From positions 62,001 to 126,000 of the IMG/VR virus record IMGVR_UViG_3300036853_000446: DNA of 64,000 bases. One strand, written 5' to 3'. A program made the position numbers and the translations under genes. The first letter of the stretch is position 1. Every line of letters starts with the position of its first letter. Shown one piece after another: positions 4,038 to 45,798 of this stretch. The notes below the pieces were generated by a model, which did no database searches, was not told the DNA's origin, and saw only the letters and a program-made list of their open reading frames with translations.

Positions 4038-4052
4038 TTCACATCCACCCTG

Positions 4053-6559: not shown

Positions 6560-6563
6560 ATCT

Positions 6564-7871: not shown

Positions 7872-7872
7872 T

Positions 7873-13101: not shown

Positions 13102-13114
13102 CTCACAAGAGCAA

Positions 13115-13130
13115 GCTCAAAAGAGGACTA
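13115..13130 (-). promoter_or_regulatory. CTTTT-core motif copy
   Basis: TAGTCCTCTTTTGAGC, identical 16-mer to 20680..20695, 14 nt upstream of the fibre ATG. Confidence 0.55.
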
Positions 13131-13158
13131 AGCTTTCTGCGACGGATGGCCCCCCAGC

Positions 13159-13611: not shown

Positions 13612-14259
13612 TCAGTCCCTGGCTTCTTTGCTCTGTCCCTTGGCCTTGGGAGGCCGGCCCCGCCGGGCTCCATTGACAGGAGCGGCAGAGGCTACGATCG
13701 ACGGCGGGGGCGGCTCTTCGGCGGTGGGCGGCTCTTCAGAGCCGGGCACGGGGGCAACAAGGGCCTCTTTGGTGGCCCGGGCCACCGCACGACGTTGGTC
13801 CAAATCCTCGACCGCCGACATTTGGGCATCTGGACGTACTTCCTGAACCGCTCCTTCCAACGCTTCAGCCATCTGACCTTCCACTGCCTGAAGTTTGGCC
13901 TTCTCCGCGTCCATCACCTTCGCTGCGAAGGCAATGGCTTCTCGGAGTCCGACGACGCGGCCCTCTGCGATCAGACGATGCTTCTCGTTCATGATGCGCA
14001 GATTGTCGATGGCCGCATGCACCTTCAGCACATAATCCTTGCAATGCGCTGCAGCCTCGAGGTCGATCTTGCCCCCGTCCCGATCGGCATCGATCCGTTC
14101 GAAGACACTCTTGAGTGTCGACTGTTGAAGCTCGTTCAGAGCAACGTGATAGCCCTCTTTACGCAGGATGTCCTTCTCGGCGGACTCCCGCATGTCGTCG
14201 TACTTGAGGCCAAGTTCGTTGATCGTGCCGATCTTGACTTGAGACTTCAGAGGGCTCAC
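13612..14259 (-). CDS. Coiled-coil hypothetical protein (215 aa)
   Basis: Charged heptad-like helices, Pro-rich C-terminus; stop abuts the next ATG. Confidence 0.6.
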   Translation of the reverse strand: MSPLKSQVKIGTINELGLKYDDMRESAEKDILRKEGYHVALNELQQSTLKSVFERIDADRDGGKIDLEAAAHCKDYVLKVHAAIDNLRIMNEKHRLIAEGRVVGLREAIAFAAKVMDAEKAKLQAVEGQMAEALEGAVQEVRPDAQMSAVEDLDQRRAVARATKEALVAPVPGSEEPPTAEEPPPPSIVASAAPVNGARRGRPPKAKGQSKEARD

Positions 14260-14272
14260 TCACGGACTCCTA

Positions 14273-15841: not shown

Positions 15842-15866
15842 GGTTCTTGTTTCCTCAACTTGCGAT

Positions 15867-15882
15867 GCTCACAAGAACTCTA
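15867..15882 (-). promoter_or_regulatory. CTTTT-core motif variant
   Basis: TAGAGTTCTTGTGAGC, 12/16 identical to the 13115 and 20680 copies. Confidence 0.5.
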
Positions 15883-15890
15883 TTGGCACT

Positions 15891-16217
15891 TCAAGGCTCA
15901 TCGAGGGCCAAATAGTCGGCGAGAATCTTGTCGGCCGCACGGGGCGCCACCTCGAGTACGATAATGTCGTAGCCTGTACCGGAGCCCCCGCTCTCGAGGA
16001 TGACGTAGTCATCTATGAGCTTGAGACGCTGCCCGTTGAAGTACACGCTGACGGTCAGGAACGGGAGGTTATGGGCGAACTTATCACCGTCCGGCGCCGT
16101 GAACACCAAATTGGCGCCATCCCGGGAACCACTTAAGTCCTGACCCGTACGGAAGCGCCCGCCCGCGACAAAGAGCTGCGACGCCGTCTGTAGCGAGAGG
16201 AAGTTGACGAGGTGCAC
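15891..16217 (-). CDS. Small virion structural protein (108 aa)
   Basis: GSRDGANLVF...VSVYFNGQRL..IDDY...AP.AADKI motif; GAGG SD 7 nt before GTG. Confidence 0.6.
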   Translation of the reverse strand: MHLVNFLSLQTASQLFVAGGRFRTGQDLSGSRDGANLVFTAPDGDKFAHNLPFLTVSVYFNGQRLKLIDDYVILESGGSGTGYDIIVLEVAPRAADKILADYLALDEP

Positions 16218-16267
16218 GCCACTGCCTCAGTAGCCATTCTGGAGCGAGCCTGACGTACCGACGACAC

Positions 16268-16666
16268 TCATTCGAGGGCCGGGGTATAGTCGTATGGGTA
16301 CGAGCCCCTCACCAACGCCGCCGGAGAGTCGACTCCCGGTACGCCGCCCGAGACCGGCTGCACCACCAGCCAGAACTGCTCCGTGTCGACCAGGCCGGCA
16401 TCGATCGCCCCGCCCGCCGCGTAGGTTGAAGGGTTGAACACGACACGCACTCGATTGGTCCCCGGCATGGTGTGCAGCCGGTTGCGGTCGATCGACGGGT
16501 CGAGGTAGCCCACGCCGATTCCGACCGTCAGTAGAGTGACCAACACGGGCGGACCGGCAGTCTTCGACGACGCCTTGATCACATAACTCTCGACCCCCTC
16601 TTGCTTGGGGATCAGGAGGTCCACGATGCCGGGCGCCCGATAGCCTACCGTAAAGTTGGGGATCAT
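16268..16666 (-). CDS. Hypothetical structural protein (132 aa)
   Basis: Coupled to the upstream gene by a 4-nt overlap; beta-rich. Confidence 0.55.
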   Translation of the reverse strand: MIPNFTVGYRAPGIVDLLIPKQEGVESYVIKASSKTAGPPVLVTLLTVGIGVGYLDPSIDRNRLHTMPGTNRVRVVFNPSTYAAGGAIDAGLVDTEQFWLVVQPVSGGVPGVDSPAALVRGSYPYDYTPALE

Positions 16667-22873: not shown

Positions 22874-23752
22874 TCAGAAGCGCGTCACGATGATGCGCAC
22901 CAACCCTCTAGGGTTGTGGGCCCCCAGGCCGAGGTTCTCAAATACAGAAAATCCAATCGTCCGTGCTTTCGGATCATCCGCTGAAAGTACGGTGAGTTCC
23001 GTGCGCACGGGCACTCGACCGAACATCTCTGGCTCGGTCGCCAGATAAATGAATCCGGCGGGAACCAAACGACTCGTGATGATCTGCGCGCCCCACAGAG
23101 TTGCCTGGAGACCCGTCTTCAGCAACGTGGCTTGCGACTCGATATCCAAGATGTCGCGACCAAACTTGCGGATGTCCGCGTAGTCGACCGCATTCATGAA
23201 AATGCGCGCGACCCTCAAGTCGTGGCGTTCGATCTCCGCAAATCCGTCCGCGAGGACGCTCGGCGAGACCGGGGCCACCACGGCCAAGTCTGGGTTCGTA
23301 CCGCCCGCGAGGGTATCGAAGCCGCTGACGGCGATCGAATCGAGTACGGCAAAGACGCGCTCGTCTTCCGCCGCCTGAATCTGGGCCTTCGCGAGGTCCT
23401 GAGCGCGCTCGATGAGGTCGAAGCGACGCTCTTTGATCTGCGTGAGCGGGATCTCGGGGTTCGAGGCGATCTCGAACAGCGGGAAGATCACCCGCCGAGG
23501 CTTTTGAATCGAGACGATGTTCTGGCCTTCCTCGCCGACCACGAACGCTGTGACTTCCGGGTCTTTGTCGTAGATCGGCAAAGCACCGTCAGGCAGCTGC
23601 TCGACGAGGAAGGTCTTTCGACCCACCGCCGTGTAGTCGCGACGAAGGCGTAGGGGTTGAACCATCGAGGCGGCCAACTTGGCGCGCCCTGCCGCAGTCT
23701 TGATGTACTCACTGATGAGTTGCTGCTTGGCTTGGTTTGAAACTTGTTGCAT
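22874..23752 (-). CDS. Major capsid protein, HK97-like (292 aa)
   Basis: Position after protease, scaffold and decoration genes; followed by a strong terminator; FEIASNPEIP...DLIERAQ..AKAQIQAAED..F and terminal GFSVFENLG pattern. Confidence 0.8.
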   Translation of the reverse strand: MQQVSNQAKQQLISEYIKTAAGRAKLAASMVQPLRLRRDYTAVGRKTFLVEQLPDGALPIYDKDPEVTAFVVGEEGQNIVSIQKPRRVIFPLFEIASNPEIPLTQIKERRFDLIERAQDLAKAQIQAAEDERVFAVLDSIAVSGFDTLAGGTNPDLAVVAPVSPSVLADGFAEIERHDLRVARIFMNAVDYADIRKFGRDILDIESQATLLKTGLQATLWGAQIITSRLVPAGFIYLATEPEMFGRVPVRTELTVLSADDPKARTIGFSVFENLGLGAHNPRGLVRIIVTRF

Positions 23753-26273: not shown

Positions 26274-26289
26274 GCATAAAAGGATTTCA
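26274..26289 (-). promoter_or_regulatory. CTTTT-core motif copy
   Basis: TGAAATCCTTTTATGC upstream of the scaffold; TGA is the protease stop; TCCTTTTATG shared with the 3171 copy. Confidence 0.4.
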
Positions 26290-27822
26290 GATCCCCAAAT
26301 CAAAAAGTCGTCCTTTGGTGATGAGGGCGAGCTTCTCGCTTTGCGTGGGCTCACGCCCGAGGACCCGACCACACGCGGTCAGGTAGGTCGCCACATCTAC
26401 ATAGGAGGCTGCGCCGCCCACCGCGAGCACGGTCCGATAGATCCGAGCCTCCCCAGCGACCGTCGGAGTCTTGTGAAGTAGATCCAAAACCCTAGATATT
26501 GCGAGAACATCGCGTCCCGAGAACCCTCGAGAGGCCTCTACGGCGCGCCACCCGCCGGCTCTGTGCAGGAGCACGCCCTCGGTGACTCGCGCCGCGTTCT
26601 GACGGTCCCCGATGAGGCGCCCCACGGCATGGGCGAGCCGCTGACGCAGGGGGCTCGCGCTCGCCGGGATCAAATTATTGTTGGAATGATCCTCTTCGAC
26701 CTCGTTCCCCGGACTCTTTCCCCCCATGTCCTGACGGATCTTCTGAACCGCGCGGTCGGTGAGCGCCTTGGCGAGATCTTTGACGACCGAGTCGAGTGGA
26801 TCCTTCTCCACTTTAGGACTCGGCTTCTTCCCAGCCCCCTCACCACTCTGATCGGTGTCATCACCGCCACCATCACCGTCATTACCAGCGCCGCCCGGGA
26901 ACTGCTCCTTCTCGTCACCGAAGTCGAGTGCGGTTCGAGCTGCCTTTGCGCGGGCGTTGCGATCAACACGACGGGGCGGCGCACTCAAGGCCACCTGCAG
27001 GCGATCGGTATGGAGATGATTGTAGAGTGAAGCCTCTTCGGGCGAGAGGATGTTTCGGACGACGGCGCCTTTGAAGGCGGGATTGCCAACCCAGGAGGCC
27101 TCTATAAATTTGTTAGAGTTCGGCTCGCTAACATTTCCACACAGCTCTGCAATCTTGCGTTGCGTCCCAAGGATATCGAGAAACGTGTTTCCCTTCTCAT
27201 ATTTTATGTGGGCACAAAGTTCGGTTTCGTCAGCGGCGACGTTGCCGCACTTAGTGCAGGCCGTGAAACTTACATTACAGCCCATCGAGAGCGTCTGGAG
27301 TTGCTTCGAGTTGATCGCCGCGATGAGCGGTCGATGCTTCCGAGCGGTTGCGACGAGAATGTCGATATAGACGCTGTCGCCGATATCGCGGGCGCAAGCG
27401 TCCACGATCTTGCCCTTGCTCATCTCGGGCAGCTGCAAGTGTTCGACGTAGTTTTCCCCGCCTACGAACGTGCGGAACGACGCGAGAAGTAGCTTCCTTT
27501 CCCATGCGTCGTGGTTCGAATTTATATAAGCGCTCGTCTTCGCGGTGATGTAGTAGTCCTGGAACCGTCGATCAACTGTGAACCCGTCCTCGAGGTGACG
27601 CCCGAGAGCCTTCGGACCATTCTCGGTGTCGACCGACGCCACGATAGTGCAATGGGTCAGGAGGTAGTCTTTGGGGGTAAACTCACCGAGGGTAACTTTG
27701 GAGGCACCTCGCCTAGCAAACGCCGACCCTAAAGCTTGCGCGCTGTCGCGCACTCGATCCCAAACCGGCATGTTGATGTCCGGCTTGATGATGTTGGCGT
27801 AGGCGTATTTGGCAAAAGCCAC
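26287..27822 (-). CDS. Prohead (capsid maturation) protease with C-terminal extension (about 511 aa)
   Basis: YVEH, LSMGC, FIEASWVGNPAF fit HK97/assemblin-type proteases; CxxC...C insertion; GTG 27822 has AAAGAAAGGT SD. Confidence 0.65.
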   Translation of the reverse strand: MAFAKYAYANIIKPDINMPVWDRVRDSAQALGSAFARRGASKVTLGEFTPKDYLLTHCTIVASVDTENGPKALGRHLEDGFTVDRRFQDYYITAKTSAYINSNHDAWERKLLLASFRTFVGGENYVEHLQLPEMSKGKIVDACARDIGDSVYIDILVATARKHRPLIAAINSKQLQTLSMGCNVSFTACTKCGNVAADETELCAHIKYEKGNTFLDILGTQRKIAELCGNVSEPNSNKFIEASWVGNPAFKGAVVRNILSPEEASLYNHLHTDRLQVALSAPPRRVDRNARAKAARTALDFGDEKEQFPGGAGNDGDGGGDDTDQSGEGAGKKPSPKVEKDPLDSVVKDLAKALTDRAVQKIRQDMGGKSPGNEVEEDHSNNNLIPASASPLRQRLAHAVGRLIGDRQNAARVTEGVLLHRAGGWRAVEASRGFSGRDVLAISRVLDLLHKTPTVAGEARIYRTVLAVGGAASYVDVATYLTACGRVLGREPTQSEKLALITKGRLFDLGI

Positions 27823-27826
27823 GACG

Positions 27827-28183
27827 TCAGACCTTTCTTTGGACAGGATATTTCGGCGCCTTGCCAGTCCGCACAAACTCGTCGATGGCTTTGAACACCT
27901 TGGTCACGTAGGGCGCCGCGTGCAGCCGACGATTGATCGCTGCCTTCAGCTTCTCGAGGTCAGCGGGATCCGAGCTGTCTTTCGACGCGCCCATGTCGCC
28001 CTCGATATCTTCCAGTGCCTTCAGCAAGTGCCCAAGACCATAGATGTTGTGTTGGCGATTCTTTTTTCTGGCCGCAGCCTCCTGCTGCTGATCCCACTGG
28101 ATCAGTAGACCCTGCAGAATCAAGAGGAAGCCCTTCACCGTTGCAGGTACACCAGCAATCACTCTGCGGTCGTAGTCGTACAT
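27827..28183 (-). CDS. Hypothetical protein (118 aa), possible head-internal protein
   Basis: Abuts the upstream stop; N-terminus MYDYDRRVIAG. Confidence 0.55.
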   Translation of the reverse strand: MYDYDRRVIAGVPATVKGFLLILQGLLIQWDQQQEAAARKKNRQHNIYGLGHLLKALEDIEGDMGASKDSSDPADLEKLKAAINRRLHAAPYVTKVFKAIDEFVRTGKAPKYPVQRKV

Positions 28184-28951: not shown

Positions 28952-31672
28952 TTAGGGAGCCAGTTCCCGCCCGGTGTCGTCCTCGGCTTCGATGACCGCC
29001 GACGACTGATCATCGCCGTACGCAGCCATATAGGGCTCGTCCGAGTCGGTCTCGATGGGCGACATGGGATTTTTGAACGTGTCCATGTAGGGCTCGTCCG
29101 AGTCGCGCTGAAGGACCTGGGCGGCCTTCGCCATCTGCGCGCGCGAGAGGAGGCCCTCGCTCAGTACGCCCCGAGTGAAGCTCTCACTCTCGAGAGCGAC
29201 CTCGGCCTGACGCGCTCGCAGGCTACCCTGGCCATAGACGAGGGACTCGACCGAGTCCGCGATGCGGTCGAGGTGATTGACGAGATGCTTTGCCGCCGTG
29301 AAAGACATCCCCAGCTTCTTGTGGCCGTCCTGGACCCAGCGCGCGAGCTGGTCGATGTTCTGCAGGGTCTGATTCGCGGCCGTCTTTTGTTCACTTGAGA
29401 GTCGCAGCATTTGCCTTACTCCGTTGTCGGTTCTCTTGAAGAGGTTGGTATCTTGTGCCGGGGCAATAGAAGAACTGTCAGCAGTTCGACCGGTCATGGG
29501 GACCTTCACCGTCGTTGCCAGCGTGACGAGTTGGGCGTCGGACAGCTCGTCGAGCGCGACCATCGAGAACGGAGGCTGCTCCAATTGCGCGGCCGTCTCC
29601 CCCGTGAGCAAGACCGTGAGCAGTCCTCTCGCTTTACGTCGTCCGTCGGATGGAAACCTGGCGTACACGGATCTTTCCAGGGCGCCGCGTCCTCGCGCAT
29701 CCTCCGGGAGGCCTATTGGCCTTGATCGACGGTCGAGGGTCGAGGGCATCGGTAATGCGGCGAGATAAGAGGAAACGAGCGTCTTTGCCGCGACCCGGGC
29801 GGCGATTTTCGTGTTCTTCTTCTTGGTCGTCGGCTTCTTCTTCTTCTTTTTGGTGGTTGGCTTCTTCTTCCGCTTGGTTTTCTTCTTCGTCGTTTTCTTC
29901 TTGGTCTTCCTGGTCTTCTTTGCAGGTTTATTTCGATCCTGCAGGTCCTCCCAGAGCCGACGCGCGGCGGCTTTCAGTGCGTCTTCACCCTGAGCATTGG
30001 CGTAGCCAGCTGGCTTCACCGGGGGTATGGGGCGCTTCGGTCTCTTCCCGACCGGGTTCGCCTTCCAAACCTTCCGTGCGTCGTCGTACTCGACCACAAG
30101 CTTCTGGTGCTCGGCAAAGGCCTTGTCGTAGACAGCGGCTTCCTCCACGTCGAGGGTATGACGGACCTTCTTGTATTTCGCTGGCTCGAGACTCTTGAGC
30201 CGCTCGAGCGTCTTGACCTGGAAGCGCTTGGCCCCTTCGTGCCCGTCCTTGTCCCCGTAGGCGCTCGCGCGAACCTTGAAGAAATCGCGCGCCTCCTTCA
30301 TCCCGTCGAGAATGTCGGAGGGATTGTCCGTTTCAGAGATCGCCCCGCGACCCAGATACAACTCTTTGGCATGCTTATAATCGTTTGCCTCCAGGAAGGA
30401 CCGCATGATGGCCTCGCCGCCCTTATGGCCCGAGACCGAGGCCATCATCTTCTTGACGGCCCCCTCCGGAATCCTCTTGAAGCCGCTCGCCGCAGCGGTG
30501 GTCTCGAACACGGAAGTCGCCGTCTTCGAGATCTCTTCCTCCCCGACCTTGCCAAGTAGGGCCCGCGCGACCTGCTGGGCCGCGAGGGGGGAGACCGATC
30601 CGTCAAATGAGAGCTTCTGTTCGAGCTGGTGCTGCACCGCGTAACTCATCGCCACGACCTGCATCTGGTGCTGGTGGTAGGCGTCCGCCTTCTCCTGCCG
30701 GGGGAGTGAATCGAATGCGACCGTTTTGCCCTTCGCGTTGCGCCAGCTCTTCGGAGGCTCGACGCGATCCGGATCCGTTTGGTAGACCGTCGCCACCTTG
30801 GCCGCGAACTCCGCCGGGTTGCCCACCGGCTGGGTCATCGTGGCCCGATAGTTCTCGATGAACGCCTTGGCGTCGTCCGGATGGATCTCGTCCGCGATCA
30901 GCTGGGCCGCGAGTTTAGACGGAACGCTGTCGACCAGGAGAAGGGTCGTTTCCACGCGCTCCGCCGCCGACACCTCGCGTTGCTTCGGAGCCCCAATGCG
31001 CAGCTTCTTGGCGACCGACGGCGGAGGCGGAGGCTTCTTCTCTTCTTCCTCCTCGTCACTATCATCATCGTCATCGTCGCTATCATCATCGTCATCGTCA
31101 TCGTCGCTATCATCATCGTCGTCTTCCGACGGATCCGACTGCTTCTGTGGCGTGACTTTAGCCGCAGGATCAGGGCCCTTCCCAGCCGCAGGATCGGGAG
31201 TCTTGCCGGGTGCAGCGCCGGGCTTTGGAGCTTGGCTTTGGGGTTTCGACGGAGGGGGCGCGACGTAGTCCGGATCCCCCTTTTTCGGCGGCGGATCCCC
31301 CTTTTTCGTCTTCCATTTCTCGTACTTGCTCGGCTCGGCCTTCAGGGTCTCCTCAGTAATGAAGACCTTCTTGCCCGTATCCCTGCTTCGCGCCGGGATC
31401 TTCTTTCCTCTCGTTCCGGGCGAACTTGCCTCGTGGTGCAAGAAGCGCAGGGCCAGCCGATCCCGCATCGAACCGCCAATGTTCTTGTAATTGAGCGAGG
31501 TGTCCTTTCCCTGGAGGTCCGGATCGGAGTCCGTGTCAGGATCGCGATCGACCTCCATACGCTCTCGACGTCGATCCCGACGGGGCGGCTTCTTCTCCGG
31601 CGCGGGCCGAACGAGGCGCTCCGCCTCCTCGTCTTCCCTCTCGACCGGTGGGAGTGTCGCGAGCCTCAGCAT
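28952..31672 (-). CDS. Large low-complexity head-associated protein (906 aa)
   Basis: Immediately downstream of portal; acidic tract, Lys tract, RLALRFL and ARVAAK motifs, DSDEPYM x2. Confidence 0.7.
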   Translation of the reverse strand: MLRLATLPPVEREDEEAERLVRPAPEKKPPRRDRRRERMEVDRDPDTDSDPDLQGKDTSLNYKNIGGSMRDRLALRFLHHEASSPGTRGKKIPARSRDTGKKVFITEETLKAEPSKYEKWKTKKGDPPPKKGDPDYVAPPPSKPQSQAPKPGAAPGKTPDPAAGKGPDPAAKVTPQKQSDPSEDDDDDSDDDDDDDDSDDDDDDSDEEEEEKKPPPPPSVAKKLRIGAPKQREVSAAERVETTLLLVDSVPSKLAAQLIADEIHPDDAKAFIENYRATMTQPVGNPAEFAAKVATVYQTDPDRVEPPKSWRNAKGKTVAFDSLPRQEKADAYHQHQMQVVAMSYAVQHQLEQKLSFDGSVSPLAAQQVARALLGKVGEEEISKTATSVFETTAAASGFKRIPEGAVKKMMASVSGHKGGEAIMRSFLEANDYKHAKELYLGRGAISETDNPSDILDGMKEARDFFKVRASAYGDKDGHEGAKRFQVKTLERLKSLEPAKYKKVRHTLDVEEAAVYDKAFAEHQKLVVEYDDARKVWKANPVGKRPKRPIPPVKPAGYANAQGEDALKAAARRLWEDLQDRNKPAKKTRKTKKKTTKKKTKRKKKPTTKKKKKKPTTKKKNTKIAARVAAKTLVSSYLAALPMPSTLDRRSRPIGLPEDARGRGALERSVYARFPSDGRRKARGLLTVLLTGETAAQLEQPPFSMVALDELSDAQLVTLATTVKVPMTGRTADSSSIAPAQDTNLFKRTDNGVRQMLRLSSEQKTAANQTLQNIDQLARWVQDGHKKLGMSFTAAKHLVNHLDRIADSVESLVYGQGSLRARQAEVALESESFTRGVLSEGLLSRAQMAKAAQVLQRDSDEPYMDTFKNPMSPIETDSDEPYMAAYGDDQSSAVIEAEDDTGRELAP

Positions 31673-33525
31673 CAGAAGCGCCCACCACCGCCGCCGCCCT
31701 CATCGGGCTCCGCAGGGGCGGGTTTCACAGTGAGCTTGAGATACTGCGCGACGCGCTCCGTCACGTCCGTTTTTTCGGCGAGCAAACGACCGACCTCGTT
31801 GCCGACCGAACGGATGATCTCGTTGAACATCGCGTCGTTGACCGTAAAGAGATCCCGCTCGAGCTTGGATTTCGTCTCGTCCGGATCGATGTTCAGCATC
31901 TCCAGGATGAGGTCGACGCTGATCGAGCCCTTTTGATAGAGGTTAAAGAGAGCGTCGAACGTGTCCTGGCTATCCCGTAGCGGAAGGCGCGTGAAGCTGA
32001 GCCGCGGGAACAGGACGACTTCCTGACCCCACTGGTCCTTCTCGACGAAGCCCATCCGGCGGGCGACGGGCTTGAACAGCGACTCTTCGACGTAGTCCTG
32101 GAGGATCTCCCGCAGGTGGAGATACCGCGTGTTGATGACCTCGAGCTTGAGTCGATCGCCCGAGTAGAGAGACTCGCCGCTCATCAGGCTCTCGGTGACG
32201 CCGAGCCCGGAAAGGAGCCGGCGCTCCGTCTGCTCGTACTCGGCGCTCAAGTCGAGTAGGCGGTCTCGAGACCCCATCTCCTCCCAACGTATCTCGTAGT
32301 TCGCGACGATCGAGTAATCGGGGTCGACGAGCGCGAGATCGACTTGCTGCCGGAGAGCCTCCGTGTCGGCATCGGACAAGCCTTCCGCCCAAATGATGCG
32401 CTTGGGCGTCATCGCGCGCGACGCGATCGAAGTCTGCGCTTGCCGGAGCTTCTCCCTAAAGTACAAGGTTCTCAAGCATCTATCGAGAATGCTCTGTCCG
32501 ATATCGGCGTCAGCATGCTTTCTCGCCATCAACAAATGAACGAAGCTTCCTTCGTCGGGGTCCGAGCCCATCGGAATGAGCTGTCCCTGCTCCATGTATT
32601 GACGGACTTCGGCCGGAATTTCCTCGGCCATCTCCTGCGCTATCGGATCCCCTTGCTTGGCCTTATCGAGCAGAGCGCGGTCGCGATCGCTCGGAATGAG
32701 TTCGCATTTGACCTTGTCCGTAAAGCTGAAGGTCGTGATCTTGACCTTGTCGATCGGCAGGATGATGAGCTGCTGCCAACCCTGATAGTTCTTCTGATAA
32801 TGGGTCAGCTCTTGCGCCTCGCCGTCGTCCTTCGGAGTCCAGACTTCCTCCTCGAACTCCCGCGGCTCCCCCCCATCCGTCAGCTCGGCGCGCTTCTCGA
32901 CATGCCGCGTGTGGCCAACGTCCATCGGGGTCTCGACCGCGCTATCTTCAGCAAATACGGCCACATTGCCGTCGAGCCAAAAATGATGAACCATCGTGAT
33001 GAGGCGCTGAAACAGCTTCACCCGCTGGCACATCCGCTCGAACCGACTGAGGATGTACTGGCCGTAGTCATGGGCGTCTTTGAAGCCCTCCGGACATGTC
33101 CTCGGCTTCGGCGGGGCGAGCCTCACTTTCGAGAGGGGCAGCTCCGTATGCAGGTCGATCGCCTGCCCGACGAGTTCGTCGGTGTTGTAAAAATGCCGGT
33201 AGATCTCCCGCTTCTCTCGAAGCGACTGCGGCAACTCCAAAAAATCCGTCGACAGCTGGGGACTAAAGAAATTGTCCCCGCTGCTCATCATCGTGTTGCC
33301 CATGGCGGACGACGACCCGAAGCCGCTCATCCCCATGCCGCCCATGCCGCCACCCAGGCCGCCACTCATGCCCGAGGCCTTCTTGGAGAGCTGGCGCGCG
33401 AGACGCTCCTTGGGCGTCAAGGTCGACTGAAAGCCGCCGGACACGTACGGTCGCGTAAGCCGCTGCTCGGTCCGAGCGATGGTCCGCCCCCCTGGCTGAT
33501 TTGAGAGCCACCCGTCACGAGCCAT
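31672..33525 (-). CDS. Portal protein (617 aa)
   Basis: Near terminase and upstream of protease; large-phage portal-like segments (FY.TD.LV..AIDLH, SILDRC.R.L..REKLR.AQ, LLSGLGV..SL.SG). Confidence 0.75.
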   Translation of the reverse strand: MARDGWLSNQPGGRTIARTEQRLTRPYVSGGFQSTLTPKERLARQLSKKASGMSGGLGGGMGGMGMSGFGSSSAMGNTMMSSGDNFFSPQLSTDFLELPQSLREKREIYRHFYNTDELVGQAIDLHTELPLSKVRLAPPKPRTCPEGFKDAHDYGQYILSRFERMCQRVKLFQRLITMVHHFWLDGNVAVFAEDSAVETPMDVGHTRHVEKRAELTDGGEPREFEEEVWTPKDDGEAQELTHYQKNYQGWQQLIILPIDKVKITTFSFTDKVKCELIPSDRDRALLDKAKQGDPIAQEMAEEIPAEVRQYMEQGQLIPMGSDPDEGSFVHLLMARKHADADIGQSILDRCLRTLYFREKLRQAQTSIASRAMTPKRIIWAEGLSDADTEALRQQVDLALVDPDYSIVANYEIRWEEMGSRDRLLDLSAEYEQTERRLLSGLGVTESLMSGESLYSGDRLKLEVINTRYLHLREILQDYVEESLFKPVARRMGFVEKDQWGQEVVLFPRLSFTRLPLRDSQDTFDALFNLYQKGSISVDLILEMLNIDPDETKSKLERDLFTVNDAMFNEIIRSVGNEVGRLLAEKTDVTERVAQYLKLTVKPAPAEPDEGGGGGGRF

Positions 33526-34049: not shown

Positions 34050-35357
34050 TCAGACTGACCGCCGACCTCGACGAGACCTGACAGGCTCCTCCTCAAAGAG
34101 GTTCGGATGGTCCCCCAAATACTCGTCCCAATCGAGCCCGCCGCTCAGCGGTGTCAATGAAGATTGCTCCGCCTTCGCGGGTTGAACCGCGTTCTCTAGG
34201 CCCAACGGGCCCAGGCGGAAATATCGAAAACCTCCGCCGCCCGTCCAAGCTACGGCCTTGCTGATCCCGCCCTGGTCCGTGCCGTCAACAACGGCCTTCA
34301 TCCGAGGCACAATGTGCGTGTGACAGTGCTCGCCCTGCTCAATCATTATCCAACGCCGACCCATCTTGTGAGCAACGGCCCCCGTGGTTCCGGAGCCCGC
34401 AAAGGCGTCGAGGACGAGGTCGCCGGGTTTGGTGGCGATGTGCACGATGCGCTGTAGAAGACGCTCAGGCTTCGGTGTGTCAAACACGTGCCGAGCACCG
34501 AAAAGTTCAATCATTTCCTTCTTGGCCTCGTCCGTGTGCCCCACGTCCGCATGCGGCCACCAATTGTGGGGCGTCATGCCGTCACGGACCTCTGAAAGAA
34601 AGAGCTTCACACGTGGCGCAGTGTTGGTTCCATCGCTGCCCCACCAGATGCGGTTCTCCGTGACGTGCCGCTCATGAGCCGCCCGGCTATACTTCCACGC
34701 CTTATTGGGGTTCTTGACGACTGCACCGGTGTTGGGGTTGGTAATGTCGTAACAAAGGTTACGTCGGATATGTGGAGCTGCTTGGTTGAGGTAATCGACT
34801 GACTTCCACGGTCCACGCGAATCATTATCTGGATTCGAATAGCGGGCTCGAGCCTCGTCGGTTCTAGGCAAGAGGCCGCTCTCGAACCGATTTGATTTCG
34901 AATAGACGAGCGCGAAATCCGTGATGGATGCAATGCCGCGACAATTGTTGCTGGCACTGTATTTCTTTTGCCAGGCGATGGTTGCTTGATACCCCGCTCG
35001 CCCGAAGATCTCGTCACACGTGACCTTCACGTAATGGACTCCATGATCGTCCAGCGTTACCCACAGCGATCCATCCTCCGAGAGAAACTGTCGAAGGAGT
35101 CGGATACGATCACGAAGGAATGCCAGCCAAACTCGATGCTCGACGTCGTCATCGTAATGCGCAAACTTGTTCCCCGTGTTATACGGCGGATCGATGTAGA
35201 TGCATTTCACCTGACCAGCGAACTCACGCTCCAGCAGCTTCAGCGCCGGCAGATTGTCCCCGTGGATCAGCCGATTCTCGAAAGTGCCTTCTACAACAGG
35301 CTGAGCAGGATACGAATGCTCGGGGTCTTCGACCAGCGTGAGCGGCGGATATTCCAC
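34050..35357 (-). CDS. Beta-class amino DNA methyltransferase, type III Mod-like, orphan (435 aa)
   Basis: IHGDNL, YIDPPYNTG, TPKPERLLQRI, VLDAFAGSGTTG, GGISK..W.GGGGFRY; no Res subunit adjacent. Confidence 0.92.
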   Translation of the reverse strand: MEYPPLTLVEDPEHSYPAQPVVEGTFENRLIHGDNLPALKLLEREFAGQVKCIYIDPPYNTGNKFAHYDDDVEHRVWLAFLRDRIRLLRQFLSEDGSLWVTLDDHGVHYVKVTCDEIFGRAGYQATIAWQKKYSASNNCRGIASITDFALVYSKSNRFESGLLPRTDEARARYSNPDNDSRGPWKSVDYLNQAAPHIRRNLCYDITNPNTGAVVKNPNKAWKYSRAAHERHVTENRIWWGSDGTNTAPRVKLFLSEVRDGMTPHNWWPHADVGHTDEAKKEMIELFGARHVFDTPKPERLLQRIVHIATKPGDLVLDAFAGSGTTGAVAHKMGRRWIMIEQGEHCHTHIVPRMKAVVDGTDQGGISKAVAWTGGGGFRYFRLGPLGLENAVQPAKAEQSSLTPLSGGLDWDEYLGDHPNLFEEEPVRSRRGRRSV

Positions 35358-35413
35358 ATCCTGCAGCTACACCGGTTGACCTCTATGACTTTCGGAAGTT
35401 ACGGTTTTCGCAG

Positions 35414-35849: not shown

Positions 35850-37079
35850 TCAGCTATAAAACTTGAGAACCTGACGGATTGCAGCCGGTGGGACCCGGTA
35901 CTCGCGCTCGCCTCCGTGGAGCGATATACCCGGGTACTCCATGTCGACCTCCACCGAGACAACGCCGATGTCCTTGGGATCTGCATCCTTTAGGTAGGCG
36001 ATGAGCTTATGCCGATTCATGTGTACGGGATTCAGGCGACTCGTTTGGACGTACAAAAAGGCATCGTACACGTTGAACACATCGATCGGGTCGCTCAGTA
36101 CCTCGTCTATGTCCCGCTCCTCGGACGCATGACCGATGGCTTTTACCGTCAGGACCCACCGACGTCCGTTGTGCGTGAGGTCCTGATATTGCTTCTTAGC
36201 CTGGCTACCGAGCCAAAGCAGAAACTCTTCGATGTTGCCTTCTCGAAGGCCCCAATCGAGAATCTGTGACGCTTTGATTTGCCCGGTGGCGATCAAGGCG
36301 GCCTCTTTGAATGAGCGGGCGATATCCAAGGCTGCCTTCAGGTCGTACGTGAACGAAATCCCATTGCCACCGGACTTCAAACTCTGCGAGCCTCCGAGGC
36401 CGATCTGGTCCTTGGGCATCTCGGCGGAGAAACCCCGTTGGTAGATTTCCCGTGCCTTGACCGATGCGTGATAGAGTGTCTCGACTTTGCCTGGCTTGGC
36501 GTCACCGGTCTCGAAGGCCTCGAGCTGAGCCAACTTGCCATCTAAGAACATTACGAGCTTGCGAGTCTCTTCGGCGAACTCCTCGAGAATTTTCAGGGGC
36601 TCCGGCATCAGGCCAACCTCATCCATTTCATTCCAGGCGAATCTATCCAGGTTCGTCAGCGCCGTCCCGAGGCCGCGAAGAGTAGCGCCATACTTATATT
36701 GATCCTTGTCGAGAACATTCGCAACGGCCTCCACCAACGGCCGCGCAAACCTATCCAACATGTGGGGATTCTTAGGCGCCAATTGGTTGAGGTAATGAAA
36801 CGCGGAGTCGAGGTCATTCTGGTGGCGGTTCAGTGCCTCGCGAATCTTCGACCACGTGGGCAGCCCGACCTTGGCCAACACCTCTTCTTTCAATGACTGC
36901 CAGTTAGCCTTCTCAGCAAGCTCGGTTGCCAACGCCATGAGCTGTATGAGGCCCTTCTTCGTGTCCTTCTCGAGGGCTTTCAGAAAAACGAGGATTCTGC
37001 GAGGCGGCAGGATGAGGGCACGTCTCGAAAATCCCCCGAGCGTGAGGTAACGTTGGGCAACGCGGGCAGAGAGATTCAT
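35850..37079 (-). CDS. ADP-ribosyltransferase-fold protein with N-terminal RVA motif (409 aa)
   Basis: TLYHAS...RGF...GNGISFT.D...A..IA and C-terminal GGEREYRVPP; N-terminus MNLSARVAQRYL. Confidence 0.6.
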   Translation of the reverse strand: MNLSARVAQRYLTLGGFSRRALILPPRRILVFLKALEKDTKKGLIQLMALATELAEKANWQSLKEEVLAKVGLPTWSKIREALNRHQNDLDSAFHYLNQLAPKNPHMLDRFARPLVEAVANVLDKDQYKYGATLRGLGTALTNLDRFAWNEMDEVGLMPEPLKILEEFAEETRKLVMFLDGKLAQLEAFETGDAKPGKVETLYHASVKAREIYQRGFSAEMPKDQIGLGGSQSLKSGGNGISFTYDLKAALDIARSFKEAALIATGQIKASQILDWGLREGNIEEFLLWLGSQAKKQYQDLTHNGRRWVLTVKAIGHASEERDIDEVLSDPIDVFNVYDAFLYVQTSRLNPVHMNRHKLIAYLKDADPKDIGVVSVEVDMEYPGISLHGGEREYRVPPAAIRQVLKFYS

Positions 37080-37142: not shown

Positions 37143-39152
37143 TTACCTTGCGAAACGAAGAGATCCTCGGCGACCGCCCCCCGGCGCTTGCCGCGGGGGC
37201 AGACCGTGCTGGCGGGCTCGAAGGGCACGGAAATTGGTCATCGTGGCCGCGGAGGCGGCAAAGGGCCGGTTGTCACTGTACCCGTGCGAGATGAATTTCT
37301 CCGAACTCATCTCGAGGAAGCAGAGCCAGACCGAACGAACGTAGGCGTCGGCAAAATCGTCATGAGCGCCCTTCTTCTTGGGAGCTGAGACAATGACGAC
37401 GTCCTTCGCCACGCTCTTCGCGCGTAGACTCAAAAGCTCGTCGATGTGCGGCGAATGCCTGGCGGCCCCTACCTCGATCGAGTGTTTCGGGAGCGGGAAA
37501 TCGTAGATGAGGAGCGTCTCGTTGTACATCATCGATTTCGTCGCCTGGTACATCTTCGAGGTCTGGTCTCGCGTAAAATGCTCAGACGTAAACTGTTTGA
37601 GGCCTTTCTTCGTCAGCGACTGTTCGAGCGGAATGCCGTTCCAGCGATCGAAGAGGCCCTGCTTGATGTGAAAGCGCCTCGTGATCAGGTGGATCCAATC
37701 GGCGATCTGGTCGAAATCGAGCCGTTGCACGTCTTTCAACGTCTTCGAATACTCGGTCGAATACTGCCCGAGCAAATGCGGATTCGTCTCCCGCCAGTCT
37801 TCACCCGCGCGCCAGCCCTCGTGGTAGTCGAGAACGATCCTGTCCTGCTCGATATGGTTGACGACGATGAACGTCCCGTCGTCGACCAATCCGACATCGA
37901 TTCCCATGTTGTGGGGGCGCCGCGGGGGACCCCTCGTGATGGGCCGCGATTCGGGCTCGATGCAGGCCTGGAGGTCCTCTTCCCGCTCGATCCAGCCCGA
38001 CAGTTGGTCGCTGAACTGAGCCCCGTACTCGACGTTGAACGACGTCGCGTCCGAATAGTAAGCCTGCTGGAGGTCAGAGAGCGGAACCGTCGGGTTGACC
38101 TCCCAGGTCGGAGCTTGGATCCCGAGCATGTTCGTCGCGCCTTTGCCCCCTCGCATGGCCTGGTCGAACAGCTCGAAGAAGCGCCCCGATTTTCCCAACG
38201 GAGACGAGATGCAGACGACCCTCGATTCCTTGCCTCCTACGGGCAACATGGGGTTGGTCGGGTCCTTCGGGGAGAAGGCCGCGGCGGACGGCGTGACGGA
38301 GGTATAGATCTCTTCGGCGCTCCCGGGGCCCGTATCCAGAAAGTGCGCGAACTCGTCGAGAATGATGACGATGTTGCCCGCGCCACGGAGTCCTTTGCCG
38401 GTAGCGCCCTTGAAGGTCAGCCGAACGCTCGCCTTGCCGCTGAACGAGGTGTATTTCCCGTTCTCTCGATAGATCGCGCCGTATTTGTCGATGTCGAATG
38501 GCGTCCGAAAGTTGACCTGGCTCTGCGTGTTGTTCGCCTGGTACGGTCGAAAGTAATCGCATTTGGCGAGATGGCCCGCCACCTCGTTGAACAGAATGCC
38601 GGCCTGATCCTTGTCCGTGGCGACCGAGATGATCTGGATCCGGTTGCCGTCGGGCAAGCCGTAGTAGGCTTGCGGGTTATAAAGATTGAGGAGACGATAG
38701 ACCTCGTAGCTAGCAAAGACCGCAGAAAGCGCCGTCTTCCCAGCGCGCCGACCGAGCGCGAGGAATAGATCGCGCCGCTCGTGGTCCTGCGCGCCGATGT
38801 TGCAGCGCCCCTGGTTGAAAAGGTACTCGAGGTATTGCTTCTCCGTGAACGTGTACCGGGTATTGCCCGTGAGCACGTCGCGGACCTTGATCCGGAGGTA
38901 ATCCTCCTCCGGCAACGTGTCGTCGAGTTCGAGGAAATAGTAGAGCTTGACGATGAATCGCTGCACCGGAAATAGGGTCATGTGCAGACCCCAGTCCGAT
39001 TCGATGTATTCGAGGATGTTGAAAACGTTGTCAGCGGACGTGACGCGCTGACCGTCGACCGCCGGGGCCTTCCTCAAGGCATCGCGCTTCGCGTCTTGAC
39101 CCGCCTGGCGAATGAGCCCGGCCAGACCGGGCTTTGGAGGAAGCGCCGCCAT
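37143..39152 (-). CDS. terL: Terminase large subunit (669 aa)
   Basis: Walker A LGRRAGKT, Walker B IILDEFAH, CISSP coupling motif, nuclease IDVG and HDDFADA. Confidence 0.9.
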   Translation of the reverse strand: MAALPPKPGLAGLIRQAGQDAKRDALRKAPAVDGQRVTSADNVFNILEYIESDWGLHMTLFPVQRFIVKLYYFLELDDTLPEEDYLRIKVRDVLTGNTRYTFTEKQYLEYLFNQGRCNIGAQDHERRDLFLALGRRAGKTALSAVFASYEVYRLLNLYNPQAYYGLPDGNRIQIISVATDKDQAGILFNEVAGHLAKCDYFRPYQANNTQSQVNFRTPFDIDKYGAIYRENGKYTSFSGKASVRLTFKGATGKGLRGAGNIVIILDEFAHFLDTGPGSAEEIYTSVTPSAAAFSPKDPTNPMLPVGGKESRVVCISSPLGKSGRFFELFDQAMRGGKGATNMLGIQAPTWEVNPTVPLSDLQQAYYSDATSFNVEYGAQFSDQLSGWIEREEDLQACIEPESRPITRGPPRRPHNMGIDVGLVDDGTFIVVNHIEQDRIVLDYHEGWRAGEDWRETNPHLLGQYSTEYSKTLKDVQRLDFDQIADWIHLITRRFHIKQGLFDRWNGIPLEQSLTKKGLKQFTSEHFTRDQTSKMYQATKSMMYNETLLIYDFPLPKHSIEVGAARHSPHIDELLSLRAKSVAKDVVIVSAPKKKGAHDDFADAYVRSVWLCFLEMSSEKFISHGYSDNRPFAASAATMTNFRALRARQHGLPPRQAPGGGRRGSLRFAR

Positions 39153-41704: not shown

Positions 41705-43489
41705 TTACCTCGTAGCCTCGCCGTCGGGAGCAAAGGGCTCTTGATTTGATTGACCCGGGGAAAGGCCATCTGGTTGCCTGATGGTGTGCGTCGTAAAATC
41801 GTAGCGCTCGTATCCCGTGTCCACGTCATCGAGCGTGTAGTAGGTGTTGAGCAGGTCCTGACCGCTCTCACTATGGGTGTCTTCGGGCGTCGGCATCTCG
41901 GACGTGCCAATCGACACCAAGTTGTCTTTGGGCCCCGAGTAATAGTCGGACCGCGCCACGTCACCGGCGACGTCCTGTGGCAGTCGCCCGTAGAGAGCGT
42001 CCTGAGCCTGCCGGTGGAGCGCGCCGATCTCCGGCGTCGAGTCCCCCGCTGAGTCCCCCGCTGACTGCGGCACTGTGCCGGGTAGCCCGCTCTGGGGGCC
42101 CCAAACACCCTTCGTTCCGTTGCCTTCACCGGAAGGGTTTGCGTAGCCGCCGGCACCTTCCCCGCGCGCGCCGTAGCCGATGCCGAAATCCCACGCTTCG
42201 GTGGGCGTGTCGTCCGAGTTGGAATCCGGAATACCCGCCGAAGCTTCGGGAGCCTTCCACATCGCGCTGAGGTTGCGCCAACGCTGGTATCCGCGGTGGT
42301 CACCCTCCTCGACACGAACATAGTAGTCCATGACCTTCTCCCAATCCTGGGCGTTCCAACGCCCGAACTGGTGGGTCGTCAACTTCAGCGCTCTGGCAAT
42401 GCCCTTCGTCTCCCCCGGACTCGTGTGTTCCCACCAGTCCTCGATCTCGTCTGCAGTAGGTGCCCTGGCCGCGGCCGCGGCTGCCCGGGACAGGTCATTC
42501 TCAGCCGGACTCTCGGACTCGTTAAAGTCGCCGTAATCGCCCGTCCCTGTCCCCGGGCCCAGGTGATTGACGCGCGGACCGCCCGGAAGCTCCGCCACGG
42601 GCTCCGACGAGTTCGCTTTCTCGAGGCTACGAGAGGCCTTCTTTGGCGGGACGACGTAGATGGCTTGAGCCAGTTGCTCTGCCAACGGCGTCTCTACTGA
42701 CGCGATGCAGCCAGGGCGCGTAGGGTCCGTGTAAAACTCGTGGACCCAGGCCCGGTCAGACATACCTGACGATCGAGACTTCCAGGAGGCTTCCTTCGTC
42801 CGACCGGGAACGTCGTCACCATGCACCTCGCCCTCCGCCTGCGAGGCATCGGCGGTGGGTAAGCCGGACGCCCCCTCGCCCTCGGCGTCGTCGGTCTTCG
42901 GCTTCTTCTTCTTTCTCTTCTTTGACTTCGGCTCTTCAGGCTCGTCCTCCGACTCGCTCTCGCCCTCGATTTCGTCGATCTCGTCCTCAGCCTCGCCCTC
43001 GGGATTCTCCATGACGTCTTGCGCCTCTTCGACGAAGCGGGTCACGTCCTCCTGGTCACTCGGATCGAGCTGAGCGAGTTTCGGCTTCCAATGCGGCGCG
43101 TTGATCTCGTCGAACATGGTGTCGGAGATCGCCGACAAGGCTTCCGAGGCCTCGAAGAGCTTTTGCCGCATGTCGGCAAGCTTCATCACGTACCCGCGCC
43201 CACCCATCAGGCCATCAGGACTCACCGTCGTGCTCTTGAGACGGCTCAAATGCCGGTACGCCGTGAGCGTGTGGCCGAGCGCGACGGTCGAGGCCCAGAA
43301 CGCCTTCGACAGCGGTTTGAGCGCCCTCGCTTGGAACTCGTGATCCTTGGGAATGTTGCGCTTCCCCGCCGACGTCAGATCCTCCGAGCCCGATCCGTTC
43401 TGAGAAGACGGCGGAAACGCCGCGGTCTTCCGCCGCTCAGGCGACGACAGATGCCGAGCCGCGACTCGGGCGCTAGAGGGATCACTCAT
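41705..43489 (-). CDS. Large low-complexity protein, probable internal head protein (594 aa)
   Basis: N-terminal SARVAARHL and RKTAA; helical domain followed by acidic/Gly-rich segments bounded by KEAS, KKAS, KANS. Confidence 0.65.
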   Translation of the reverse strand: MSDPSSARVAARHLSSPERRKTAAFPPSSQNGSGSEDLTSAGKRNIPKDHEFQARALKPLSKAFWASTVALGHTLTAYRHLSRLKSTTVSPDGLMGGRGYVMKLADMRQKLFEASEALSAISDTMFDEINAPHWKPKLAQLDPSDQEDVTRFVEEAQDVMENPEGEAEDEIDEIEGESESEDEPEEPKSKKRKKKKPKTDDAEGEGASGLPTADASQAEGEVHGDDVPGRTKEASWKSRSSGMSDRAWVHEFYTDPTRPGCIASVETPLAEQLAQAIYVVPPKKASRSLEKANSSEPVAELPGGPRVNHLGPGTGTGDYGDFNESESPAENDLSRAAAAAARAPTADEIEDWWEHTSPGETKGIARALKLTTHQFGRWNAQDWEKVMDYYVRVEEGDHRGYQRWRNLSAMWKAPEASAGIPDSNSDDTPTEAWDFGIGYGARGEGAGGYANPSGEGNGTKGVWGPQSGLPGTVPQSAGDSAGDSTPEIGALHRQAQDALYGRLPQDVAGDVARSDYYSGPKDNLVSIGTSEMPTPEDTHSESGQDLLNTYYTLDDVDTGYERYDFTTHTIRQPDGLSPGQSNQEPFAPDGEATR

Positions 43490-44769: not shown

Positions 44770-45798
44770 TCAGGCCCCGACTCCCGATCCGCAAAATCGA
44801 CCGTCCGGGCCTTGGGAGGTTACCTCCCACCGCTTCCGAGTCTGATTGCGCACTAGCAAACTGAGCCACGCGCAATTGCAATGCCAATTCTGGGCCTCGC
44901 ATTCGGCGCATTGCCCGCAGGAATAATGCCCTTCCGTGTTCATCCGCGCCATCACGTAGGCGGACGAAGGGCGCTCGCCCATGTCTCGAAAGAACTCCTC
45001 GAAGGAATTCCGCCACCTCGAGCACACCGTGATCCCGATCCCGCCGTAGCGAGGATACCTATCGCTCCTAGAGTTAAAGCATCGCGTGTGAATGCCCACC
45101 CATGCTCGATACTCCGGAGTCTTGGTCATTCCGTGTCTGGTATTTGCGTGCGAAGGACCTGACCTGCACGGCCGACGATTCGTGTTCTGCTCAGCCCTCG
45201 TAGCCCACCGGACGTTGCCCGGCTCGTAATTCCCATCGTTATTGATTCGATCAAGTGAATGCTGGGGACTCGGCCGAGGCCCAACGTAGTTGTAAAAAGC
45301 CTGAAAGTCGTGGATCCACGCGGAGTGCATCCGAATGCCACGCCCGCCGTAATCGTCATAGGCGTGATGGTTGACATCGAAACAGCGCGACTTGATCGCA
45401 CCCCAGCATCTATGCTCCGGCTTATAGCTCATTCCGTGTCTGAAATTAGTGAGGCCTCCATTTCGCTCAACACCACTGACGACGGGCCACTGTGGCCGTC
45501 TTCCAGGTCTCCTCGGCCGGCAATTAGCTGCCTGTTCGACCCAAGTTGCCCAGCGCACGTTGCCTGGCTCGTAGTTACCCTCGTTGTTGATACGATCAAG
45601 CGAATGATCCGGAGACGGCTTCGGGCCCACGTGCTCATAGAACGCCTTGAAATCGTGCACCCATTCAGGATGCACCGTTATTCCGCGTCCGCCATAGTCA
45701 GGGTACCTTTGACTATTGCAATTCAAACACCGAGCTTTGATTTGACTCCAACAGTGGTATTCGGGGGTCTTACTCAACCCGTGTGATTTGACGGCCAT
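44770..45798 (-). CDS. HNH-like homing endonuclease-family protein with three tandem domains (342 aa)
   Basis: Three HG..K.PE...W..I..RC......Y..YGG.GI.....W...F..F....G..PS units; first two carry SLDRINN.GNYEPGNVRWAT. Confidence 0.8.
   Translation of the reverse strand: MAVKSHGLSKTPEYHCWSQIKARCLNCNSQRYPDYGGRGITVHPEWVHDFKAFYEHVGPKPSPDHSLDRINNEGNYEPGNVRWATWVEQAANCRPRRPGRRPQWPVVSGVERNGGLTNFRHGMSYKPEHRCWGAIKSRCFDVNHHAYDDYGGRGIRMHSAWIHDFQAFYNYVGPRPSPQHSLDRINNDGNYEPGNVRWATRAEQNTNRRPCRSGPSHANTRHGMTKTPEYRAWVGIHTRCFNSRSDRYPRYGGIGITVCSRWRNSFEEFFRDMGERPSSAYVMARMNTEGHYSCGQCAECEAQNWHCNCAWLSLLVRNQTRKRWEVTSQGPDGRFCGSGVGA

Follow-up and report, generated by a model that had tools for sequence, protein, structure and literature searches.

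A 64,000-nucleotide (nt) stretch of a huge-phage genome (positions 62,001 to 126,000 of IMG/VR record IMGVR_UViG_3300036853_000446, referred to here as the window) contains an open reading frame (ORF) at 35850..37079 on the minus strand that encodes a 409-residue protein, P0001. We conclude, with a probability of about 0.5, that P0001 is a modular cargo-type effector of the phage: a protein that is tagged at its N-terminus, injected into the host, and similar to ADP-ribosyltransferases (ARTs) in its C-terminal domain. An earlier sequence-only reading of the window had proposed this ORF as a possible injected effector, and its boundaries and N-terminus, MNLSARVAQRYL, proved correct. Along the gene, the predicted layout is a tag, a linker, a four-helix bundle, and the ART-like domain. 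The source genome, G000, is a single linear contig of 407,634 bp with 60.5% G+C and an estimated completeness of 86% (CheckV).

The C-terminal domain and its candidate active site

We searched 1.84 billion cluster representatives exhaustively with HMMER and obtained 287 members of the P0001 family at E ≤ 1e-3 and 220 at E ≤ 1e-10, the family size of 287 being a count of clusters at 50% identity. Many of these proteins sit on contigs of 140-540 kb. We judged conservation on 130-146 aligned family sequences. The N-terminal half is poorly conserved except for a PPR motif after the first dozen residues. In the C-terminal half, H204, G216, and E393 are invariant, and at least 90% of the sequences retain E200, L202, Y203, F217, the GLGG loop (227-230), S242-F-T-x-D, R255, K258/E259, W276, R348-x-x-P, G372, and R395-V.

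The motifs on which the sequence-only reading had built its case lie where it placed them, all on the minus strand. His204, in ETLYHAS, is encoded at 36468..36470; RGF spans residues 215-217; Ser242 is found in the G-I-S-F-T of GNGISFT (36354..36356), at the position held by tyrosine in the GIYFT of ART-PolyVal proteins; and E391-R-E393 lies in GGEREY (35901..35909), followed directly by a conserved Y/F-R-V-P. E391 is invariant among the 22 closest homologues, yet falls below 90% across the whole family. Because the motifs carry invariant or at least 90% conserved residues in an alignment of this depth, they are not a product of chance.

AlphaFold2 supplied with a 130-sequence alignment gave a model with a predicted local distance difference test score (pLDDT) of 91 and a predicted template modelling score of 0.87; from the single sequence, the model was useless (pLDDT 39). 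The predicted protein begins with a helix at residues 2-14 (pLDDT 55-75) and a low-confidence linker at 15-28. An up-down four-helix bundle follows (residues 29-191; 36507..36995, minus strand), which is poorly conserved in sequence and could act as an adaptor. The conserved α/β domain, our candidate ART, occupies residues 196-409 (35853..36494, minus strand). Its first half is predicted to consist of β1 (199-206, with His204 near the end), a helix (209-215), the glycine-rich loop, β2 (241-244, with Ser242), and a second helix (247-264), and its last strands are β3 (372-379), β4 (386-388), β5 (393-396, starting at Glu393), and β6 (401-408). The predicted order β1-α-β2-α-insert-β3-β4-β5-β6 fits an ART core, a split β-sheet of six strands whose NAD+ cleft lies between the two sheets. 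H204, S242-F-T, and E393 fall on predicted strands 1, 2, and 5, where members of the ART superfamily have their conserved catalytic residues (H or R; Y or S-T-S; and E, D, or Q, respectively).

A helical insert of about 130 residues had been described between the serine strand and the E-x-E. There is an insert, but the distance from the serine strand to the E-x-E is 148 residues, and the part that truly exceeds a minimal ART core, residues 270-363 (35991..36272, minus strand), is not purely helical: helices are mixed with a predicted three-stranded sheet at 298-323. This segment varies by lineage, and residues 290-330 or so are missing from many homologues.

Comparisons of the domain with known proteins gave leads to ARTs. 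When residues 190-409 were compared by a protein language model, all named matches were ART families (scores 0.90-0.93): Pertussis_S1/Scabin, NarE, Enterotoxin_a, Tse2, and DUF7587, the last of which is found together with ART families. The neighbours of P0046, a divergent second member, were PARP, Arr-ms, and Tox-ART-HYD1. By the tool's own calibration, such matches are leads and not proof. In the Atlas shape search, a single row was local to residues 197-409, and it was a 191-residue cluster with PF00644 PARP, aligned over 100 residues with a root-mean-square deviation of 3.2 Å and a TM score of 0.42 when normalised by the hit; the other rows deviated by 5.6-7.5 Å. The best match of the domain profile in the PDB was a C3-type ART at an E value of 0.31, which is not significant, with the catalytic G-Q-x-E-L-L-L-P aligned on the family's G-E-x-E-Y-R-V-P. 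Searches of PDB profiles with the whole protein, the domain, and the domain's N-terminal half gave nothing significant.

We also aligned the family core with the ART-PolyVal proteins of G000 and related phages. The core-only hhalign score was 18.8 (P 0.018), compared to a mean of 11.1 ± 2.1 in column-shuffled controls, of which 1 of 200 reached that value. In the alignment, YHAS is placed on YHGT and GISFT on GIYFT, and the helix and the third strand of the two profiles also coincide. With single ART-PolyVal proteins as targets, hhalign returned nothing for the domain profile.

Additionally, the family domain occurs as a module of giant polyvalent proteins. It spans residues 951-1148 of the 4678-residue P0099, which also contains a PBECR5 RNase (2469-2563), and residues 163-407 of P0029, ahead of a topoisomerase IB (451-660). 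In P0074 and P0098, it is fused with GNAT, and in P0080 with NUDIX. ARTs are the commonest protein-modifying domains of polyvalent proteins, with GNATs typically adjoining them (PMC5512222), and these proteins are predicted to be packaged in the virion and injected (PMC5512222, PMC9503650). P0001 itself carries one effector-type domain, compared to the two or more per polypeptide that define a polyvalent protein.

Overall, we consider it quite probable that the C-terminal domain has the ART fold. The ART assignment of the sequence-only reading gains from the motif and strand pattern and from several weak-to-moderate signals that lead to ARTs only; a statistically solid match to a solved ART, by fold or by profile, was not obtained. 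Its "mixed H-S-E triad" is a fair description of what appears to be a hybrid active site, in which a Y-H-x-[ST] and glycine-rich loop resembling those of PARP and diphtheria toxin are combined with the Ser-x-Thr and E-x-E of the R-S-E clade. Calling the protein a non-homologous analogue of T4 Alt was imprecise: should its domain be an ART, the two proteins are distantly related through the superfamily.

Outside the window, G000 holds two canonical ART-PolyVal (PF18760) genes with the classical H-Y-E/D site, at C1:142160-142672 on the plus strand and C1:178804-179604 on the minus strand (L009 and L010). With P0001 counted as an ART, the phage would thus encode at least three ART-type proteins.

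A terminal peptide common to unrelated proteins

The N-terminus of P0001 contains the peptide S4-ARVAQRYL-12 (37044..37070, minus strand), which lies within the predicted helix 2-14 and scores 28.5 against a position-specific scoring matrix (PSSM) of the tag. Its core, R-V-A-x-R-[YH], covers residues 5-10. A regular expression followed by a PSSM scan of the 407-kb genome in six frames identified about 20 ORFs with the tag, of which the window contains two. Matches of at least 22 bits all fell at ORF N-termini, with one exception, described below. Strong matches lie almost exclusively within some 30 residues of the ORF start, and lower-scoring ones are again mostly N-terminal; one or two further copies are located beside a stop codon. 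Even a loose form of the pattern, applied to the annotated ORFs, was found 9 times in the first 20 residues versus 11 times in the remaining 125,000. The N-terminal tag claimed in the sequence-only reading is therefore real, given its presence on some 20 ORFs, its terminal position, and its conservation as a peptide, which together go far beyond chance.

The codons for arginine, valine, and alanine within the tag vary freely among synonyms, so selection acts at the level of the peptide. For the same reason, we rejected a DNA- or RNA-level repeat. A twin-arginine translocation signal was also rejected, as the arginines are not followed by a hydrophobic h-region.

The tagged proteins are enzymes and not structural proteins. 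They include a topoisomerase IB (E 9e-26), a GNAT, a ferritin-like protein, and J-domain proteins; three others have weak matches to Zn-metallopeptidase models, two of these to an anthrax-lethal-factor-like model. The same domain types are fused in polyvalent proteins, sometimes to the P0001 domain itself (topoisomerase IB in P0029, GNAT in P0074). The second tagged gene of the window (41705..43489, minus strand) encodes a 594-residue protein that starts MSDPSSARVAARHL and has no Pfam or PHROG match.

The exception to the N-terminal position is a J-domain protein (C1:171064-172095, minus strand) with RVAARY at its C-terminus, 14 residues before the stop codon (..NASRRVAARYLETS, then stop). The tag therefore appears to work at either end of a protein. 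By eye, the tagged proteins at C1:339384-340571 and 383241-384332 also look J-domain-like. A cluster of tagged effector genes at C1:352924-357333 (minus strand) encodes a Zn-peptidase-like protein, a protein of no recognised type, a 453-residue protein with a degenerate tag, and the topoisomerase IB; in P0090 and P0029, from other phages, the P0001 domain is joined to homologues of the degenerately tagged protein and the topoisomerase, respectively. In P0090, the N-terminal part is homologous to the product of the G000 gene 355157-356518, which starts with the degenerate tag ..ASLVHRYLSTGG and lies between tagged genes.

Across the family, the first 10-15 residues differ by lineage and match the N-termini of unrelated neighbouring genes within each phage. 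In the 543-kb genome G003, the family member shares M(R/K)IxEI(L/I)xE with no fewer than eight further ORFs, among which three encode canonical ART-PolyVal proteins and a fourth encodes a weaker ART-PolyVal-like one. The tag is ..FIFE in the 391-kb genome G002, LRRRxYLxE in L002, and MKITAQEKQLILKRR on a dozen consecutive ORFs in L006, while RVAxR(Y/F) recurs on neighbouring ORFs in L039 and L040 and in G001. In the L006 run (about 3671..16515 of IMGVR_UViG_3300027841_000073), the dozen ORFs start almost identically with M(F)KITAQEKQLILKRR; among them are the family member and, directly upstream of it, an ART-PolyVal-like gene.

Among 164 full-length family members, 31 have RVAxRY-type starts and 34 have (F/I/L)(I/L)xE-type starts such as MKTFKQFLTE and MRMYEFITEA. 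The latter resemble the capsid-targeting sequence (CTS) of T4, MKTYQEFIAE (10.1101/2021.01.19.427310). The first ten residues of the T4 CTS are sufficient to load foreign proteins into heads, and the sequence ends in a cleavage site for the gp21 protease (PMC9026906). The strongest argument for an address label matched to the phage's own machinery is that the tag co-varies with the phage across non-homologous cargo. Because of the resemblance to T4 and the nature of the cargo, we infer that the address is the capsid.

Proposed role, alternatives, and known systems

We propose that P0001 is made together with the head proteins and that the amphipathic peptide ARVAQRYL at its N-terminus is an address label that would dock it into the assembling prohead, with the flexible linker and the four-helix bundle between the tag and the enzyme domain. 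The protein would then be ejected with the DNA and modify a host target at the start of infection. We put the chances of capsid loading and ejection at roughly even. The most likely activity is the use of NAD+ to ADP-ribosylate a host molecule. NAD+ would be held by His204 on strand 1, the glycine-rich loop, and Ser242-x-Thr on strand 2, while Glu393 of the E-x-E on strand 5 would polarise the ribose, allowing nicotinamide to leave and ADP-ribose to pass to a host macromolecule. If the rule of the R-S-E clade applies to this E-x-E, it hints at arginine as the target residue. Nucleic acids are also possible targets because of the conserved basic residues and the fusions to topoisomerase IB and PBECR5.

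Several results weigh against P0001 as an injected ART-like effector. Aligned at full length, the family matches ART-PolyVal with an E value of 0.11, and the piece containing the last strands, including the catalytic one, gives no significant match on its own. Among 146 family domain sequences, we found no consistent Pfam or PHROG family and no PDB sequence match, and when 5.8 billion proteins were searched with a profile, every match was an unannotated member of the family itself. Foldseek (PDB, AFDB clusters, Swiss-Prot, and BFVD) and VIA-align (wide and second-look) listed no ART; because matches to the helical bundle of the N-terminal half occupied these tables, we take them as uninformative on this point and not as contrary evidence. 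The family has no cultured relative. The position of the gene in the head module is not conserved: the copy in L039 lies among nucleotide-metabolism genes, and elsewhere family genes belong to runs of small ORFs that bear tags. Glutamate is absent from the G000 tag and from the positions directly after it, so that no T4-type (L/I)xE protease site can be read in this genome. Finally, a different motif, (H/Y)DYDRR, is carried by eight G000 ORFs and is always N-terminal, so the phage appears to use two different address peptides.

Much of this bears on whether the protein is packaged at all. An ART-type enzyme could instead stay out of the capsid and act in the infected cell, as T4 ModA and ModB do, leaving the tag with another job: recruitment to a phage-made complex or compartment, binding of a common chaperone, or a handle for regulation or degradation. 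The chaperone idea is suggested by the several J-domain proteins among the tagged set. The variable neighbourhood, often of early or metabolic genes, and the missing prohead-protease site also favour an unpackaged enzyme, as does the second motif, whose carriers include both ART-PolyVal genes; it implies more than one destination, of which at most one need be the capsid. However, the domain types of the tagged proteins are those of polyvalent proteins, a class with predicted packaging (PMC5512222), the tags of related phages closely resemble the experimentally proven T4 CTS (PMC9026906), and in G000 the gene lies between those for the terminase and the portal. We regard an unpackaged enzyme as unlikely, though it is the alternative we would weigh first. 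Quite unlikely, in our view, is an ART fold that acts on nucleic acid or a small molecule, or that hydrolyses NAD+, in the manner of DarT, Tpt1, Arr, or RES-like enzymes, in which case the protein might block host DNA or RNA functions or counter an NAD-based defence. Conserved basic residues around the motifs (R255, K258, R348, and R395), the presence of Arr-ms, which acts on a small molecule, among the neighbours of P0046, and the fusions to topoisomerase IB, NUDIX, and the RNase-type PBECR5 are all consistent with such a target. The E-x-E and the R-S-E-type neighbours fit transfer to protein arginine equally well, and these data do not discriminate between substrates.

It is also conceivable, but improbable and the last of these readings we would choose, that the C-terminal domain is not an ART. 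It might be another α/β enzyme or a head-morphogenesis or minor head protein, in which the conserved histidine, serine, and glutamate serve a different chemistry or only the fold. Such a reading would explain why no ART model or solved ART was matched significantly and why the gene is located in the head module. It would also suit a BFVD match to a "phage head morphogenesis domain containing protein" (235 columns, 19% identity, probability 0.99, E 0.068, with the aligned region unreported). Against it, all named leads from three kinds of method are ART families, the histidine, glycine-rich loop, S-x-T, and E-x-E sit on predicted strands 1, 2, and 5 as they do in ARTs, and the domain is one module among enzymes in polyvalent proteins.

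The closest functional parallel to the proposed injected effector is T4 Alt, which is packaged into the head, processed, and injected, as the sequence-only reading had stated (PMC9026906, PMC5512222). Like Alt, P0001 is a phage protein with an E-x-E strand in its enzyme domain behind a short N-terminal peptide, is encoded with late or head genes, and is proposed to modify a host target at entry (PMC9026906, PMC5512222). The Alt/VIP2 (R-S-E) clade is marked by arginine in strand 1, S-T-S in strand 2, and E/Q-x-E in strand 5; the family has S-F-T and E-x-E, but an invariant histidine and not an arginine in strand 1, and falls outside that clade. Models of the ADPrib_exo_Tox type give no sequence or profile match to it. 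Moreover, the Alt propeptide is cut by gp21 after a glutamate, and the G000 tag has none.

The other relevant ART group is ART-PolyVal (PF18760), of the H-Y-D Tox-ART-HYD2 clade. There, too, the strand-1 histidine is set in Y-H-[GA]-[TS], and strand 2 carries G-[IV]-x-[FL]-T after a glycine-rich loop; both groups are found in polyvalent proteins and huge phages, and in four phages they carry the same lineage tags. In G000, by contrast, the two canonical ART-PolyVal genes carry a different tag from P0001. PF18760 matches neither P0001 nor any of the 146 family members, although it finds those two genes. In the family, serine replaces the strand-2 tyrosine of the H-Y-D site (PMC5512222) and E-x-E replaces the strand-5 aspartate, so it does not belong to ART-PolyVal, and its insert follows helix 2 and precedes strand 3 instead of separating strands 3 and 4.

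As for the tag, the T4 CTS (found on IPI-III) is likewise a peptide of about ten residues at the N-termini of unrelated proteins of one phage, which is also true of the G000 tag. Its pattern is shared by the huge-phage tags MRIxEI(L/I)xE, ..FIFE, and MKTFKQFLTE (PMC9026906). The tags of these related phages do end in (I/L/F)xE, whereas RVAxRY is basic, contains no (L/I)xE cleavage site of the kind that would class it with the T4 sequence, and can stand at a C-terminus. A second comparison is with MuF-toxin fusions and polyvalent proteins (Iyer et al. 2017, 2022), with which the G000 set shares a toolbox of ART, GNAT, Zn-peptidase, topoisomerase IB, and NUDIX domains and predicted travel in the capsid. 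Unlike the domains of polyvalent proteins, those of G000 are encoded by separate genes with one address peptide each. A MuF domain was not detected.

Tentatively, and at somewhat less than even odds, we suggest a more general arrangement. Huge phages may address an arsenal of separate effectors to one destination, most likely the capsid interior, from which they would be ejected into the host, by lineage-specific terminal peptides. Here the arsenal would include the new His-Ser-Glu ART family, topoisomerase IB, GNAT, Zn-peptidases, and J-domain proteins, as though a polyvalent protein had been divided into individually tagged genes. The tags would evolve with the phage, as RVAxRY here and T4-CTS-like (I/L)xE sequences elsewhere, and could stand at either end of the protein.

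Encapsulin cargo-loading peptides offer a cellular comparison: they are short, can be terminal at either end, and dock diverse enzymes inside a shell of the HK97 fold. An encapsulin is a cellular nanocompartment without DNA or ejection, unlike a phage head, and we know of no sequence resemblance between its cargo-loading peptides and the G000 tag.

Head-packaged ARTs such as Alt, ARTs encoded beside terminase or portal genes, and virion-delivered polyvalent effectors had been described or predicted before (PMC5512222, PMC9503650). What would be new here is an ART-like family that lacks annotation and has an unusual pattern of active-site residues, together with an arsenal of separately tagged effector genes. 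If our reading is true, a family of at least 287 clusters with a His/Ser/Glu-x-Glu site widens the range of ART active sites and supplies a candidate host-takeover enzyme, and an address system readable from sequence marks about 20 proteins per genome as common cargo. The injected proteome of uncultured phages could then be read from their sequences, turning megaphage injection into a testable list. Rosetta-stone links that tie the tagged single-domain genes to polyvalent fusions of this domain (with topoisomerase IB, GNAT, NUDIX, or PBECR5) would support the two as alternative solutions to the same delivery problem.

Gene neighbourhood and upstream elements

In G000, the P0001 gene is flanked in the head module by the genes for the terminase large subunit (37143..39152; phrog_2, E 2.5e-24), directly upstream, and the portal protein (31672..33525; phrog_16240, E 1.3e-24), downstream in the same gene string. 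An N6/N4 DNA methylase (34050..35357) is encoded between terminase and portal. Other neighbours are a protease-like protein (26287..27876) and the major capsid protein (22874..23752; phrog_2522, E 2e-51). All of these genes are on the minus strand, as is P0001, and the G+C content at third codon positions of the P0001 gene, 0.70, is similar to theirs. At 292 residues, the major capsid protein is small for a phage genome of more than 400 kb, and it is 80% identical to its counterpart in the 223-kb record G001. Upstream of the packaging genes, an HNH endonuclease gene (44770..45798, minus strand) contains three repeated HNH-associated stretches.

In related genomes, the family gene follows the major capsid protein gene in G001, lies near the terminase gene in L005, and in G005 immediately follows an ART-PolyVal-like gene. 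Pfam, PHROG, and PDB sequence searches gave no match for P0001 itself, nor did tblastn against 50,697 deposited phage genomes, and a pattern scan of species-representative prokaryote genomes found no relative. The (H/Y)DYDRR motif described above is carried by both canonical ART-PolyVal genes, a 118-residue head-module ORF (27827..28183, minus strand), and five further ORFs.

The sequence-only reading had also drawn attention to a CTTTT-core motif upstream of the gene. CTTTT is present at -20..-16 before the ATG, but it carries no weight as a positioned signal, which we rejected because it has no fixed spacing genome-wide: it occurs in the -40..-1 region of 26 of 391 G000 genes, about three times background, at scattered distances, and these upstream regions are AT-richer. 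No sigma-70-type promoter was found upstream of the P0001 gene. A clearly enriched upstream element of G000 is the octamer C(C/G)GGTGTA, which is 12-fold enriched in the -40..-1 region and stands 13-19 nt (mostly 15-17) upstream of about 25-30 start codons on both strands. This octamer, absent before the P0001 gene, might act as a promoter of the phage or as a ribosome-binding element of an unusual type; in the window, it precedes the methylase gene (at about 35373..35380) and the HNH gene.

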